From positions 434,001-498,000 of the forward strand of contig OZ251246.1 of NCBI GenBank assembly GCA_965240325.2: a stretch of DNA of 64,000 bases. Reading direction: 5' to 3'. The translations under genes were made by a program, and so were the position numbers. This stretch comes from Rebecca billardiae RCC1528. Its lineage: Eukaryota > Protista > Haptophyta. The notes under the pieces were generated by a model that searched no databases, was not told the origin of the DNA, and saw nothing but the letters and a program-made list of their open reading frames with translations. Below, piece after piece: positions 17,865 through 26,946 of the stretch. How positions within the stretch are numbered: position 1 is the first letter of the stretch; the number at the start of each line of letters is the position of its first letter.

Positions 17865-19779
17865 TCACAAGTTGGAGAGGTGCGCCTTCACCTTCTTGAA
17901 CAGCTCGTGGAACGCAAACTGGTCGCCCTGCATGCGCTCGAAGGAGATTTGGTACGTGCCAGGCTCGCGCGCCGGCAGGATGAGCGCGCGGCAGCGCAGG
18001 CCGTTGGCTGGCGCGCGTGGAGGGCAGAGGCAGGCGCCGCGGCGCCGAGCAGGGTGGGTCAGGGCGAAGCGCGCGCGGCGCGCGGCGCGCGGCGCGCAGC
18101 GCGCGGCGCGCACGCACCTGCGTGCGCCGTGATCGCGAAGACCTCGCCGCCCTGCCGCTCGCTCACGTCAACGTCGCAGCCGAGCGCGTGCGAGGCGAAA
18201 GCGTCCTGCGCGGCGCGGGGGGGGGGGGGGGCGGCGCGGCGCGGCGCCGAGCTCGCGGTCAGATCGCAATCTCCGAGGTTCGAGAGTGCGGTGGATGAAC
18301 AGCGCGGCGGGCGCCCTGTGGCGCAGGTGTCGGAGATCGCGATCTCGCGATCTGACCGGAGATCGCGATCTCGCGATCTGACCGCGAGCACCGCCGCGCC
18401 CTGTGCTGCACAGTTGGCGTGGCGGGTCCGGCACGAGCAATGCCAGCCGCCGCGCACGCAGCCAGCCAGCGGCAGCAGCGCAGGCAGAGTGGCGGTGCCG
18501 ACTGCTGCCGGGGCAAGGACCGCGTGCGGAGCCATCGCAGCGGGCGCGGCGCGCGTGCACCGCACCTGTAGCCACAAGGACAGGTACTCCGGCTCGCGGT
18601 TCGCCGCGCTGAAGCCGAGCCGCTTCACGTACATCACCTGCCCCACCCAGGTCGGGTCCACAGGCGGTGCGCCGCCCTGCCCGCCCGCCGCGCCGCCGGC
18701 GGCGCGGCCGGGCGGCAGCGCGACCGTGCCGTCCTGAGCCTCAGACACGACGATGCGCGCGGGCTTGTGCGGCACGCTCGGCAGCAGCGGCCGCTCGGCG
18801 GAGTAGTGCGTCGCCACCTTGAAGAACTGCTGCGGGCGCAGGTTCACCAGCGGCGAGAGCATACTCGAGTAGTCCTGCGGGGCCGTGGAGAAAAAGAAAA
18901 AGGAAAGAATTCAAAATAAAGAAAGGTCACCCGAGCGAGCGGGAGGGCGCGCGGGGACAGTTGGGCCGACACCGTTGGGCGCGGCACACAGGCGCGTGGG
19001 GCGAGCGGCTTCGCGTCAGCACGCGCGCGCACGCACGCGCACGGCACGCACGCATGCGCGCGCGAAAACAGGCGTGCGCACGTGCGTGGCCCCGTCCTCC
19101 AATCATCCCACGCGCCATTCGGGCGCGCCGCGCCGGGGCACGCCACGCCACACACGCCACGCCACACACGCCGCGCCACACACGCCGCGCCACACACGCC
19201 GCGCCACACACGCCACGCCACACACGCCACGCCACACACGCCGCCCGCGCGTGGGCCCATGGGAGGGAGGCCACGGGCGCGTGGGCCCACGGGTGCCGGG
19301 GGCCGCGGGTGCGGGGGGGGGCGCACCTTGAGGACGCCCTTGAAGAGGATCGGCCGCCCGCCGTACTCGATCGGGTGCACGGTGAGGATGTTCCAAAACG
19401 CTTCGCCGCCCTTCCGATAGTTGAGGAGCTGCACCTTGCATGGCTGGCCGCGGCGCACGGCGGCGCCGAGCGCCGTGATGCACTGCTGGTCGGTGAGAAG
19501 GCCCTGGGTGAGCCGCGCGTTCCGGCCGACCACCTCGTGCCGCGCGTACCCGCACATCGACGACCACGCGCCCGTCACCGCGACGATCGGGTTGGTCGGC
19601 TGTGTCGCGTCGGTGACCACCACCGAGTCAGTATCGTCGTCCAAGTTGCCCATTACCCACTCGACGATCTGGTCCTTGACCGCCTGCACGCGCGCAGAGG
19701 CCGGCGAGGGGCTCCGCCCGCCGCACGGCCGGATCTCCTCGACCGGGTCGTCGTCGCCGCCACCGTGCCCGCCGCCGGT

Positions 19780-19820
<41 letters not shown>

Positions 19821-22800
19821 CGCCGCCGCCGCCGCCGTCGCCCGCCGCGCCGCCCCCGGCTGTGTCCTCGCCGTCGCCGTCTGCGCCGTTCCCACGGGCT
19901 CTTTTCTGCGGCGGCGGCGAGTCGACTTGGCGGGTGCTCACGACGCCCCCGCCCGCGCCGCCGCCGACGGCGCTCAGCGCGCCGCTGCGCGCGAGCGCCG
20001 CGCGAGCGCCGCTCCCATCGGCGGCGCACGCAAGCGATTCGCATGCCGGCGCGGGCGCGCACGCCGGCGCGGGCGCGCACGCCGGCGTGGGCCTCCGCTG
20101 TGCCGCCTCCGACGCAGCAGCCGTCAGCACGGGGCGGGGCACCAGCACGGGAGGGCCTGGCGGCGAGGGCGCGCCCACGTGCGCGTCCGCGCACGGCCGC
20201 TTGCCCAGCGCCGAGCCCTCGTGCACCACTGCGGGCGCGGCCGCCGGCGCGCCGCAGGCCGCGGGCACCGGCGGCGGCGGCGGCGGCGCGGCGGGAACGG
20301 CGGCAGAGAGGCCACCGGTGGCGCCCGGCCCGCTCAGCATGGCTGCCGCCGCGCCACCCGCGCGCAGCTGCCGCGCGAGCTGCGTGATGTGGGAGAAGGA
20401 GGAGGTCGAGACTTGGCCGCGCCGCATACCGGTGCCCGCTGCCACGAGAGGCGCGCCGCCAAGAATCAGCGAGCCACCGGCGGCGCCGCCCGGCAGAGGC
20501 GCGGCACCGGCCGAGGTGGCGCGCGGCGGCAGCGGCGTGCTGACAGGCGCGCCGTGCGAGCGCGCGCCGGCCGAAGGCGGCGGCTGCATCGACAGGAGCT
20601 GCTGCTGCTGCTGCTGCTGCTGCGGCTGTGGCGGCGGCGGCGGCGGCTGCTGCTGCTGCGGCGGCGGCGGCGGCGGCGGCTGCGGCTGCGTGTGCGGCGG
20701 GGCAGCGCCCGGCTGCGGCGGCGACACGGCGCGCGGCGCCTCGGCGGGCGAGGCGCGGCTTGGCGGGCCCGCGCTGCTGCCGCTGCCGCCGGCGGCATGC
20801 GCCTCCTGCGTCGGCCCACCAGCCGCCGCCGCCGCGCCATCCGCGCCGGCCAGCAGAATTGGGTCGAGCGCGCGCGGACGAGGCGTGCTCAGCGGCGTGC
20901 CGAGCGTGCCGCCCATGCCGCCGCCGAGCGCGGCCGAGCCCAGCGCGTGCAGCGCGCCGCCCTCGTGCTGCTGCTGCTGCGGCGATCGGGTGCACCACGA
21001 CTCGTACCCGGAGCCGCCGCGAGCGCCCGGCTCGAAACCGCCGAAACCGCCGCCGTAACCGCCGCCGTAACCGCCGCCAAAACCGCCGCCAAAACCGCCG
21101 CCAAAACCCGTTGCGCCGCCGCGGCCCGCCGCGCCGCCGCCGCCCGACGCCAGCGGGTCGGTGGGCTTCGAGGCGAGCGCGGCGACGCCGACGGCGGCGG
21201 GCGGGGGCGCCGTGCCGAGCGGCGAGCCAGAGCTCAGCGCGGGCGCGCAGGTGATCGATGGCGGCGGCGAGAGGCGCGGCAAGAGCTCGAACCCCGCCGC
21301 GGCCACGGGCGGCGCGCCGTGCGCGTGCGCGGCCGGCGCGCGCGCCGCCGGGGCCAGCCTGCACGGCGCGACGGCGGCGGCGGCGGAGGTCGTCGCGGGC
21401 GTGGCGGGCACGACCGACGCGGCGCCCGCCGCCGCCAGCTGCGCGCCCGCGCGCTCGAGCCAGCCGTTTGCGAGCAGCGCCGCCGGACTTGGCCGACGCA
21501 GCGGGTCCGGACAGAGCATCGATGCAATGTGCATGTGCAGCGCGGCCGAGTGCCCCTCGCACGCGGCCGCCGGCAGCGCGGCCACGAAGCGCGCGGCGAA
21601 GGCGAGGTGCGACCTGCGCGCCGGCGCGCCGGACGCCGCCTCCGCCGCCGCCGCCTCCGCCGCGGCGCGCGCGTACGCGCCGTAAGCCTCGCTGCCGCCC
21701 TCGCCCTGGGAGATTGCGATCTCCCACGGCATCTCGCCGTGGGTGAGCGCGTACGTGAACACGCCGAGCGCCCACACGTTCGCCGCCTGCGCGCACGTCA
21801 GCGCGAGCGTGCCGCCGACCTGCCCGCCGCCCACGCTCGCGTACGCCGCCGCGGCGCGCGCCTCCGCGGCCGCCAGCTCATCCGGCACAGCTCCGCCGTG
21901 CCGCCGCAGCGCGAGCAGCTCGGGCGCGGCGTACGCGGAGCCGGCCGTGCCGGCGGCGCACCCGAGCGTGCACGCCTCGAGCGTGCCCGGCGCGCGCGCC
22001 GGCCCGACGCAGCCGGCCACGCTCAGCTTCACCCGCCCCTCCGAGTCCAAAAGGCACTTGCTCGCGCGCAGCCGCGTGTGCGCGAGCCCGCGCGCGTGCA
22101 CGTAGCCCAGGCCTGTGGTGAGCCGCTGCGCGAGCGAGCGGCACGCACGGCGGGCAGGGCGCGGGCGGCGCGAGGCGCGGCTCAGAGCCGGCGCGGCCGA
22201 GCGGCGCGGTGGCCGCGCGCCTGCCGCGCACGGCTTCGCGCCCGCACCCGAATGTGTGCGTGGGCGGTCGACTCGTGCAGCCCTGCGCACTCGTCCGCAC
22301 ACTCGAGGAGGAGGTCGAGCAGGTCGCCGCCGGCGCACAGCTCGGTGATGTACACGCACGTCTGGCCGTCCTCCGCCAGCCAGAAGCCGAGCGTTGCCAC
22401 CACGCACGGGTGCGTCAGCCCGAACAACGCCTCCGCCTGTCGCGCACGCCGGATGGCGCGCAGAGCGGCGGCGGTGGCGGCGGCGTCAGCAGGCGAGTGG
22501 CACGTGGGTCGAGGGCGCGCATGGCGAGGCGGGCGCAGCGCACCATCTCTGCAGCGTGCGCGCTCGGCACGCAGATCTTGGCGGCCGCGTGCTCGCCCGT
22601 GTCAGCGTTGCGCGCGACGCGAATCTCGCTCGATTCGGAGATGTGGAGCACGCCGAGGGGCGAGGAGTCCACGATGAAACGACCGCGTTCACAAGTCACC
22701 TCGTCGACACCCGCCTTGGCGAACGTGGGCCCGCCCGAGTCGAGCGAGCTCGTGGCGAGCGACATGAGCGGAGGGTTGGGGGGCCACCCTGAAAGAATCT

Positions 22801-22873
22801 GCTGGCTCACAACCTTCGCCGAGTTGATGTGCTTGTGCAAAAGGTGCGCGGCGGAAGGACTGGCTGCCATCAC
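17865..22873 (-). CDS. Ser/Thr pseudokinase - low-complexity linker - Cys-less LOV(PAS) domain - KA1-like domain
   Basis: Introns 22437-22543, 22126-22247, 18875-19326, 18206-18565 and 18008-18117 are all GT-AG and frame-preserving. Kinase motifs AAKI, HPCVV, TELCAGGDL, YAAPE, NVWALGV. LOV motifs DSVVVTD...NPIV...GY...EVVGRNARLTQG...NYRKGGEAFWN. C-terminal VKRLGF...ISFERMQGDQFAFHELFKKVK. Confidence 0.85.
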
Positions 22874-26169: not shown

Positions 26170-26478
26170 GCCGGACCACGCCGCCCAGCACGGCCGCGCG
26201 GCCGCCGCCCGGCGGCGCCTGCTTCACCTGCTCGCGCCACGCCGGCTTGGAGAAGTGGCCAATGAGCTCACAGGCCGGGGACCACGCCGCCCAGCACGGC
26301 CGCGCGGCCGCCGCCCGGCGGCGCCTGCTTCACCTGCTCGCGCCGCGCCAGCTTGGAGAAGCGGCCAATGAGCTCACAGGCCGGGGACCACGCCGCCCAG
26401 CACGGCCGCGCGGCCGCCGCCCGGCGGCGCCTGCTTCACCTGCTCGCGCCACGCCGGCTTGGAGAAGCGGCCAATGAA
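26170..26478. repeat. Three ~106-bp tandem copies of the 3' end of the adjacent coiled-coil gene
   Basis: GGACCACGCCGCCCAGCAC...GGCCAATGA recurs at about 26173, 26279 and 26385. Confidence 0.9.
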
Positions 26479-26946
26479 CTCGTCGCCACGAGCCGCCTCG
26501 GTCGTGATGTCGTCGAGCTTGGCCTCGCGCGCGGCCTCGAGCTTCTGCCGCATGAGCCGCGCGTTGTCCTCCATCGCGCGCCGCGTCTCCTCCCGCCGCT
26601 GCGCGTTCTCGCGCACCTTCGCGTCGAAGTCGAAGTTGCCCGGCAGCAGGTCGAGCTCGCGGTCTCGCGCTTTCTGCTCGCGCTCAGCCGCCTCCTTCAG
26701 CGCGAGCGCCTGGTCGCGCTGGCTCTGCAGGCGCGCGTGCATCTCCTCGCGGTCGAACTCGTGGATGTGCCCCCACCGCTCGCGCTCGCGCTCGGCCTCC
26801 GCCCGCTGCGCCGCCTTGAGCCGCAGCACGTCCTGCTCGTGCTGCCACTCCTTCTCGATCGATTCCTCGTTGATCCGCCCCGCGGCCGGGCGCTTGGGCC
26901 GGAGGAGGATCGAGCCCCTTGCGGGCGTGGAGGGGGCCGGGATCAT
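26374..26946 (-). CDS. Small charged coiled-coil protein (~190 aa), function unknown
   Basis: MIPAPST...EESIEKEWQHEQDVLRLK...RRAMEDNARLMRQK; E/R/A-rich helical composition. Divergent from the GT41 gene. Confidence 0.6.
   Translation of the reverse strand: MIPAPSTPARGSILLRPKRPAAGRINEESIEKEWQHEQDVLRLKAAQRAEAERERERWGHIHEFDREEMHARLQSQRDQALALKEAAEREQKARDRELDLLPGNFDFDAKVRENAQRREETRRAMEDNARLMRQKLEAAREAKLDDITTEAARGDEFIGRFSKPAWREQVKQAPPGGGRAAVLGGVVPGL

Follow-up and report, generated by a model that had tools for sequence, protein, structure and literature searches.

In a 64,000-nt stretch of the genome of the haptophyte Rebecca billardiae RCC1528 (contig OZ251246.1, positions 434,001 to 498,000, hereafter the window), a gene model on the minus strand (17865..22870) joins a CAMK-like pseudokinase, a PAS domain of the LOV type and a C-terminal KA1-fold domain. 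Our tentative reading is that this one gene encodes a non-catalytic signalling protein, in which a CAMKL-type pseudokinase is followed by a disordered linker of ~600 amino acids (aa) and a LOV-derived/KA1 module. The structural observation behind this reading, consisting of the gene structure, the identities of the domains, the dead motifs and their conservation, was confirmed. We infer from it a single mRNA, the binding of flavin, and signalling in all its steps.

A script was used to rebuild the gene model, which comprises six exons (22870-22544, 22436-22248, 22125-19327, 18874-18566, 18205-18118, and 18007-17865) and five introns, and its product has 1284 aa. All five predicted introns are GT..AG with the common donor G|GTGCG, and translation of the 3855-nt coding sequence by script gave no internal stop. 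The five-intron, multi-domain gene described in the initial annotation was thus reproduced, and every motif quoted there was found. Its three expected Pfam domains were recovered to different degrees: PAS_9 on the long exon at 3.6e-10, above the gathering score; Pkinase as partial matches only, on exon pieces; and KA1 (PF02149) weakly on the last exon, with an E-value of 0.014 and 15.5 bits, under the gathering cutoff of 23.

The first domain (21454..22660, aa ~71-396, spanning introns 1 and 2) is predicted to be a catalytically dead, CAMK-like pseudokinase, as had been proposed from the window sequence. In place of the Gly-rich loop GxGxxG we found a degenerate PLGVLHISESSEIRV (aa 71-85) with one Gly left. 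The motif HRDLKxxN reads HTRLRASK (22057..22080, aa 188-195), by which the catalytic Asp is replaced with Arg and the catalytic Asn with Lys, and DFG reads VAG (aa 208-210), without the Asp. The VAIK Lys (AAAKI, aa 95-99), APE (AAPE, aa 238-241), the WxLG motif (NVWALG, aa 288-293) and the DPxxRPS end of the domain are retained, and the alphaC Glu is present within HAAEMAEAL, as aligned to MELK via the orthologue in Diacronema lutheri. The class of the kinase was judged through the same orthologue, the window kinase being interrupted by introns; the solved kinases nearest to it in a PDB sequence search were MELK, MNK1, DAPK, CaMK1, CIPK23/24, and AMPK.

The LOV-type PAS core (19327..19629, aa 1005-1105) had its best PDB match in LOV1 of Chlamydomonas phototropin (1n9l, 1.5e-20), and 134 PDB sequences matched it below 1e-3. 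In the 1n9l alignment, an Ala in GRNARLTQ (19504-19527, aa 1039-1046) opposes the adduct-forming Cys, and a Leu in FKGVLK (19327-19344, aa 1100-1105) opposes the Ibeta Gln, so that both substitutions named in the initial annotation were seen. This result indicates that the LOV-derived domain cannot form the Cys-flavin adduct. The statement that the flavin-contacting residues were kept held for three residues of GxN-R--Q (Asn, Arg, and Gln) and for the Asn in both NYRK (aa 1074-1077) and FWN (aa 1082-1084); it did not hold for the second phosphate-binding Arg (R74 of Chlamydomonas LOV1), which is Gly in the window and Gly or Ser across the family described below. The LOV domain of the orthologue was modelled with a predicted local distance difference test score (pLDDT) of ~96.

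The C-terminal domain (17865..18628, aa 1188-1284, from VKRLGF to ...FHELFKKVKAHLSNL and the stop, spanning introns 4 and 5) had no match when it was searched against the PDB as a single sequence, and an ESM Atlas feature search with the KA1 region gave no usable match. The family profile matched the C-terminal regulatory (PPI) domain of SOS2/CIPK24 in the PDB (E-value 5e-4), with the motif GDT-x-x-YH-x-F in common. We checked the fold on the domain of the orthologue, which is 54-61% identical to that of the window. Its AlphaFold (AF2) model, with pLDDT of about 90 or more, showed the order beta-alpha-beta4-alpha: a strand (73-77), a helix (82-95), four strands, and a last helix (149-165). The top Foldseek matches of this model were SAD KA1 (4yom), SOS2 (2ehb_D), and Chk1 KA1 (5wi2), and further matches were the AMPK alpha C-terminal domain and the KA1 domains of MARK1/3 (TM-score by target 0.55-0.73). 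The modelled structure confirmed the KA1 fold of this domain, and the Chk1/MARK-like KA1 of the initial annotation was borne out.

The connector between the LOV and KA1 domains (18629..18874, DYSSML...LRPQQFFK...) is conserved. When the two domains of the orthologue (P0001, aa 755-1030) were modelled together, pLDDT was 89.9 and the predicted TM-score (pTM) 0.86. The connector itself had a pLDDT of ~50 without the LOV domain and of 86-91 with the LOV domain present. In these models, the LOV-like and KA1 domains look like one compact unit. An ESM Atlas shape search with the two-domain model gave generic PAS/LOV matches only, and no similar two-domain cluster.

Binding of acidic lipids by the KA1 domain had been raised in the initial annotation. 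The KA1 domain would in that case bind acidic phospholipids like those of MARK, Kcc4, and Gin4, and the LOV-like domain would gate recruitment to the membrane in the manner of BcLOV4. The confirmed KA1 fold is in its favour, and so are a conserved KR at beta1 and basic residues of the last helix, which lie at the lipid-contact positions of MARK1 KA1. A LOV protein that moves to the membrane in blue light is also on record (mentioned in PMC8017926). However, the net charge, taken over the whole core, of the 29 family KA1 cores examined ranged from +1 to -7 and most were clearly acidic, which argues against the binding of acidic lipids; moreover, the closest relative by sequence is the protein-binding PPI domain of SOS2/CIPK24. 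We therefore regard lipid binding as disfavoured and the membrane reading as improbable. Because the KA1 cores are acidic and most like the SOS2 PPI domain, a protein-protein contact is favoured over a lipid as the output of the KA1 domain.

The protein closest to that of the window was KFE25_002455 of D. lutheri (P0001, 1030 aa), 68% identical over the LOV region. The relatives being haptophytes, and the closest one of the Pavlovales, a green-algal origin of the gene, which the GC content might have suggested, was rejected. The annotation of the D. lutheri genome was made by BRAKER2 with RNA-seq hints (PMC8379373). Word-index protein searches by the LOV and KA1 parts found this orthologue only, and the search by the kinase part found the kinase of Pavlovales sp. 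CCMP2436 only. P0001 has the same domain order, with HTRVLPSK, VVG, GQNPRLTQ, and FKGILK, and all five intron positions are common to the window gene and KFE25_002455; the architecture that the initial annotation had proposed to look for in algal proteomes is thus present in a second species, together with the losses of Cys, Gln, and Asp. The CCMP2436 pseudokinase (P0095, annotated alone with 359 aa) has HTHLRPGK and VVG, and dead catalytic motifs are common to the three Pavlovales species. Contigs of further Pavlovales-like homologues (P0006 and P0007) are too short to reach any kinase. In a contig of another Pavlovales-like alga (L003, Logan SRR30872635), the called protein P0005 includes translated introns. 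One of them interrupts the LOV domain (after LLNYR); neither the window gene nor that of D. lutheri has it, so that the intron content varies in the family.

Simple decay was rejected as an explanation of the lost residues, because D. lutheri keeps the same dead motifs, architecture, and intron positions. The initial annotation would have taken orthologues that retain Cys and HRD, with dN/dS near 1 in this copy, as a sign of decay; instead, D. lutheri shares the losses. As judged by pairwise NG86 estimates of nonsynonymous (dN) and synonymous (dS) substitution between the two species, the LOV domain (71% aa identity) is under purifying selection, with dN 0.22, dS 0.78, and dN/dS 0.28. The corresponding dN/dS values of the KA1 and kinase domains, 0.66-0.83, are uninformative, with the GC content at third codon positions (GC3) near 0.9 and dS near saturation, and were not read as relaxed selection.

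More broadly, we consider it very improbable that the gene is a pseudogene in decay or an artefact of annotating so GC-rich a genome. The window is very GC-rich (52-81% by 2 kb stretch), and long chance open reading frames (ORFs) are common at the locus. For example, an antisense ORF of 1238 aa (18961-22677, plus strand) spans the gene; such long ORFs are a composition effect here and no evidence for an antisense gene. The loss of catalytic and photochemical residues would also be expected from a pseudogene. Against this, species whose domains are only 41-71% identical retain the same losses, domain order, and intron positions, the three folded domains are intact, and MMETSP and metatranscriptome data contain transcripts of homologues.

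When the KA1-like region was used as a profile in an exhaustive search, 61 proteins were found, none longer than 501 aa. In a Pfam scan of 60 family members, PAS_9 was found in 27, a weak KA1 in four, and a kinase domain in none. The named members are KOO29568.1 of Chrysochromulina tobinii, annotated as a 'bacterio-opsin activator', and a protein of Calcidiscus leptoporus (MMETSP1334); the remaining members are from marine metagenomes and metatranscriptomes. The family alignment has, in order, GxNPRLTQ, NYR, FWN, Leu at the Gln column, the connector LQDYS...P-QF, KRLGW, and GDTFxYH. Members that carry the Cys-site motif read GxNPR (or K) L/I/V-TQ with Pro at the Cys site, and the Ala of the window is the sole exception. 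Since Pro and Leu are conserved across the alignment, the losses of Cys and Gln are to be seen as family-wide, old, and fixed, and not as recent decay. Although members are only ~35% identical, five polar residues are essentially invariant among them: Asn, Arg, and Gln in GxN-R--Q and the Asn in each of NYR and FWN.

These results indicate that the LOV-KA1 pair is a pre-existing two-domain module across haptophytes. The initial annotation had placed the LOV domain between a kinase and its KA1; this domain order stood for the window gene, but in Chrysochromulina and Calcidiscus the module stands without a kinase. Because prymnesiophytes have the module but no kinase joined to it, a kinase cannot be essential to its core function. 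Two histories are conceivable. In the favoured one, a CAMKL kinase would have received a LOV insertion, and the kinase would then have died in Pavlovales and been lost in prymnesiophytes; it is favoured because KA1 is a kinase-associated fold. Possibly, instead, Pavlovales fused a pseudokinase onto the LOV-KA1 module. No published description of the architecture or of the LOV-KA1 family was found in the literature searched, and marine LOV surveys list other partners (bZIP, HSF, RGS, EF-hand, homeobox, WRKY, and histidine kinase), so the module is apparently undescribed.

The longer prymnesiophyte members had no detectable N-terminal domain. In prymnesiophyte LOV-KA1 proteins (e.g. P0023, P0013, P0031, P0010, and P0025) a C-terminal tail with a recurring L-x-L-A-P-[LM]-P follows the KA1 domain; it is absent from the Pavlovales proteins, which end directly after KA1. 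The C. leptoporus protein (P0107) repeats, at aa ~33-55, its own LOV-like DNPIVYVTEPWQNMCGFTYA segment (~187-209), which is either a partial duplication or a chimera of transcript assembly.

Between the kinase and the LOV domain lies a low-complexity Ala/Gly/Pro/Gln linker (19687..21453, aa ~397-985, ~600 aa) that has no in-frame stop. We infer that kinase, LOV, and KA1 are probably fused in one mRNA. CAMKL kinases normally carry kinase and KA1 in one protein, and in three species the kinase and the LOV-KA1 module are same-strand neighbours. In each of the two GC-rich species, R. billardiae and D. lutheri, a single stop-free exon holds the kinase C-lobe together with the LOV domain in one frame, and this frame agrees although the linkers are unalignable and differ in length by about 180 aa. 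From the kinase end to Met739, both genes show the in-frame periodicity GC3>GC1>GC2, with p-values of 6e-6 for the window gene and 3e-5 for its D. lutheri counterpart, and no GC3 periodicity was found in introns and flanks.

The other arrangement would be two adjacent genes on one strand, a stand-alone pseudokinase and, after it, a LOV-KA1 gene with its start at Met739 (20427). The upstream 'linker' would then be 3' untranslated region (UTR), intergenic DNA, and 5'UTR, open by chance at high GC. A milder form would have a long fused mRNA and, in addition, a short internally initiated LOV-KA1 mRNA. Several observations weigh against the single fusion and in favour of two genes. A Met-led basic/Ser motif, MRRGQVSTSSFSH (20389..20427, aa 739-751), is conserved and a possible internal start; it begins with MRRGQVSTSSFS in the window, and its counterparts are MRKGRSSSSFS (D. 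lutheri) and MNKGRSSSSFS (CCMP2436). The product (P0064) of the sole transcript-type contig, L002, begins exactly at this Met (MNKGRSSSSFS), and a related KKG-S-S-F-S motif lies near the N-terminus of the models of the Chrysochromulina clade. The prymnesiophyte homologues stand alone, and the Chrysochromulina gene is intronless, with a kinesin gene and no kinase upstream. The CCMP2436 kinase is annotated alone. Composition alone keeps three of the six frames free of stops over the linker, and for this reason we gave the openness of the linker little weight. Finally, no transcript spanning the kinase and the LOV domain was found, and no RNA or DNA runs were listed for the gene or its 3' half. 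Neither the CCMP2436 kinase nor the N-terminal portion of P0064 had a match when metagenome contigs were scanned.

Nevertheless, we consider two genes rather unlikely. Barring an unseen intron, an mRNA of the kinase alone would in both species run without an in-frame stop to the end of the LOV exon, and the in-frame periodicity and the common frame described above would have to be explained. The CCMP2436 kinase model (P0095) is probably truncated. Its end reads into a canonical CAG|GTGCGT donor (L004 11700-12130), about 350 nt before an assembly gap of 5978 N (L004 12130-18107) that covers the linker, the LOV domain, and most of KA1, and the last KA1 exon lies ~6.9 kb downstream of the kinase on the same strand (MU631357.1). 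In L002, the frame is open for 34 codons (102 nt) upstream of the Met, to the end of the contig, and these 102 nt are coding-like with 67% GC, against 63% in the coding part and 45% in the 3'UTR; this contig neither confirms nor refutes a longer mRNA. The fusion is thus favoured, and it is quite possible that a short, internally started LOV-KA1 isoform exists alongside it.

We take the LOV-derived domain to be a probable ligand sensor, most likely still bound to flavin. Retention of flavin is favoured because the five flavin-contacting polar residues are invariant at ~35% identity; it is uncertain because the Gln and one phosphate-binding Arg are lost, and in total three of the eight canonical flavin-pocket residues (Cys, second Arg, and Gln) are altered, which counts against a flavin sensor. 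Alternatively, the LOV-like domain may be free of flavin and be a structural or dimerisation partner of KA1 or a sensor of another ligand, and neither light nor redox would be sensed. The family-wide fixation of Cys to Pro/Ala, Gln to Leu, and the loss of the second phosphate Arg is consistent with this, as is the grouping of non-photoactive LOV-like PAS domains (Kv channels, NifL) with LOV domains (PMC8017926). However, in canonical LOV domains the five invariant polar residues contact the isoalloxazine and ribityl parts of the flavin, and their conservation would be difficult to account for if these contacts were absent. LOV domains without the Cys, natural as well as engineered, retain flavin binding and signal by its photoreduction (Yee et al. 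2015, as cited in PMC8017926). We consider a flavin-free domain somewhat unlikely, yet a serious alternative.

A flavin-bound sensor would report the redox state or light-driven reduction of the flavin, and would not be a photocycling switch like that of phototropin. Its state would pass via the ordered connector to KA1, whose output is most likely a protein-protein contact. In Pavlovales, the likely partner of KA1 would be the tethered pseudokinase, by analogy with Chk1, MARK, and SAD, in which KA1 docks on the kinase domain. This contact may gate the availability of the scaffold to its partners. The most specific version of this mechanism, which we consider quite doubtful as a whole, is that the LOV-derived/KA1 pair is a new flavin switch of haptophytes with Pro/Ala and Leu at the two sites, which would read flavin reduction by light or redox through the rigid connector to KA1 and, in Pavlovales, would clamp or release the tethered pseudokinase scaffold.

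Other features of the locus were noted. The N-terminus before GGPTFAKAGVDEV (22870-22765, the first ~35 codons) is unlike those of D. lutheri and CCMP2436, and the true start could alternatively be Met36 (MSLATSS...) instead of Met1. Short tandem repeats were read by eye in intron 3 (about 19140-19250) and intron 4 (about 18330-18390); one has CACGCCACACACGCC-type units, and the other is a GAGATCGCGATCTCGCGATCTGACCG unit in two copies. At 26383-26922 on the minus strand, the window has a homologue (55% over 182 aa) of the 189-aa protein, unassigned in function, that is encoded directly upstream of the D. lutheri orthologue. This neighbour represents microsynteny in which the orientation differs, tandem in the window and divergent in D. 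lutheri.

Among modular flavin sensors, LOV domains have been studied best, and many optogenetic tools are built on them; KA1 domains are autoinhibitory and targeting tails of MARK, SAD, Chk1, AMPK, and CIPK kinases. Haptophytes are major producers in the ocean whose sensory proteins are almost unstudied. A LOV-type/KA1 unit would give LOV/PAS signalling an output of a new class and, if the flavin-switch version of the mechanism is true, it would be the first LOV-type sensor with KA1 output and the first sensor-gated pseudokinase of such kind. With Pro in place of the Cys, Leu in place of the Gln, and the other contacts kept, the unit would be a natural test of what a LOV pocket needs for cofactor binding and for signalling without an adduct. 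The family also suggests that a KA1 tail may outlive its kinase, which is dead in Pavlovales and absent in prymnesiophytes.

In its overall plan, the predicted protein is like CAMKL/AMPK-related kinases (MARK/Par-1, SAD/BRSK, MELK, and Chk1) and CIPK/SnRK3 kinases (SOS2), with an N-terminal CAMK-like fold, a long linker, and a C-terminal KA1. KA1 is at the C-terminus of a CAMKL-type polypeptide in the window and D. lutheri gene models, whereas the prymnesiophyte members lack the kinase. Unlike the CAMKL and CIPK kinases, the window kinase is without the HRD Asp, the catalytic Asn, and the DFG Asp; in the model a LOV-type PAS domain is packed onto KA1, and the KA1 is acidic and not basic. Also unlike them, no UBA, NAF/FISL, or autoinhibitory sequence (AIS) element was detected; the Pfam NAF domain was absent from scans of the exon pieces and of P0001, and no search aimed at NAF/FISL was made.

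The protein is like phototropin in having a LOV domain of the phototropin sequence type and a Ser/Thr-kinase fold in one polypeptide. However, the kinase comes first and is CAMK-like and dead instead of an active AGC kinase, one LOV domain, lacking the adduct Cys and the Gln, stands in place of LOV1-LOV2, and an ordered, beta-rich connector to KA1 was modelled in place of the J-alpha helix that leads to the kinase. The reading of the protein as a relative of phototropin was rejected.

The LOV-derived domain is like Cys-less LOV domains in that the adduct Cys is replaced (by Ala in the window) and GxN-R--Q, NYR, and FWN are kept. It differs from those of Yee et al. 2015, cited in PMC8017926, in that the norm of the family is Pro and not Ala or Gly and that one phosphate Arg is missing; in addition, the Ibeta Gln, which relays protonation at N5, is Leu in the family. 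Because of the Pro norm, the change of Gln to Leu, and the loss of the phosphate Arg, the published mechanism would not be simply transferable. The proteins most alike are KOO29568.1 and the Calcidiscus MMETSP1334 protein, which have the same GRNPRLTQ LOV-like domain, LQDYS connector, and KA1 module. Unlike the window gene, they are stand-alone proteins of 360-540 aa, without a kinase or a detectable N-terminal domain, and carry the extra LxLAP[LM]P tail.

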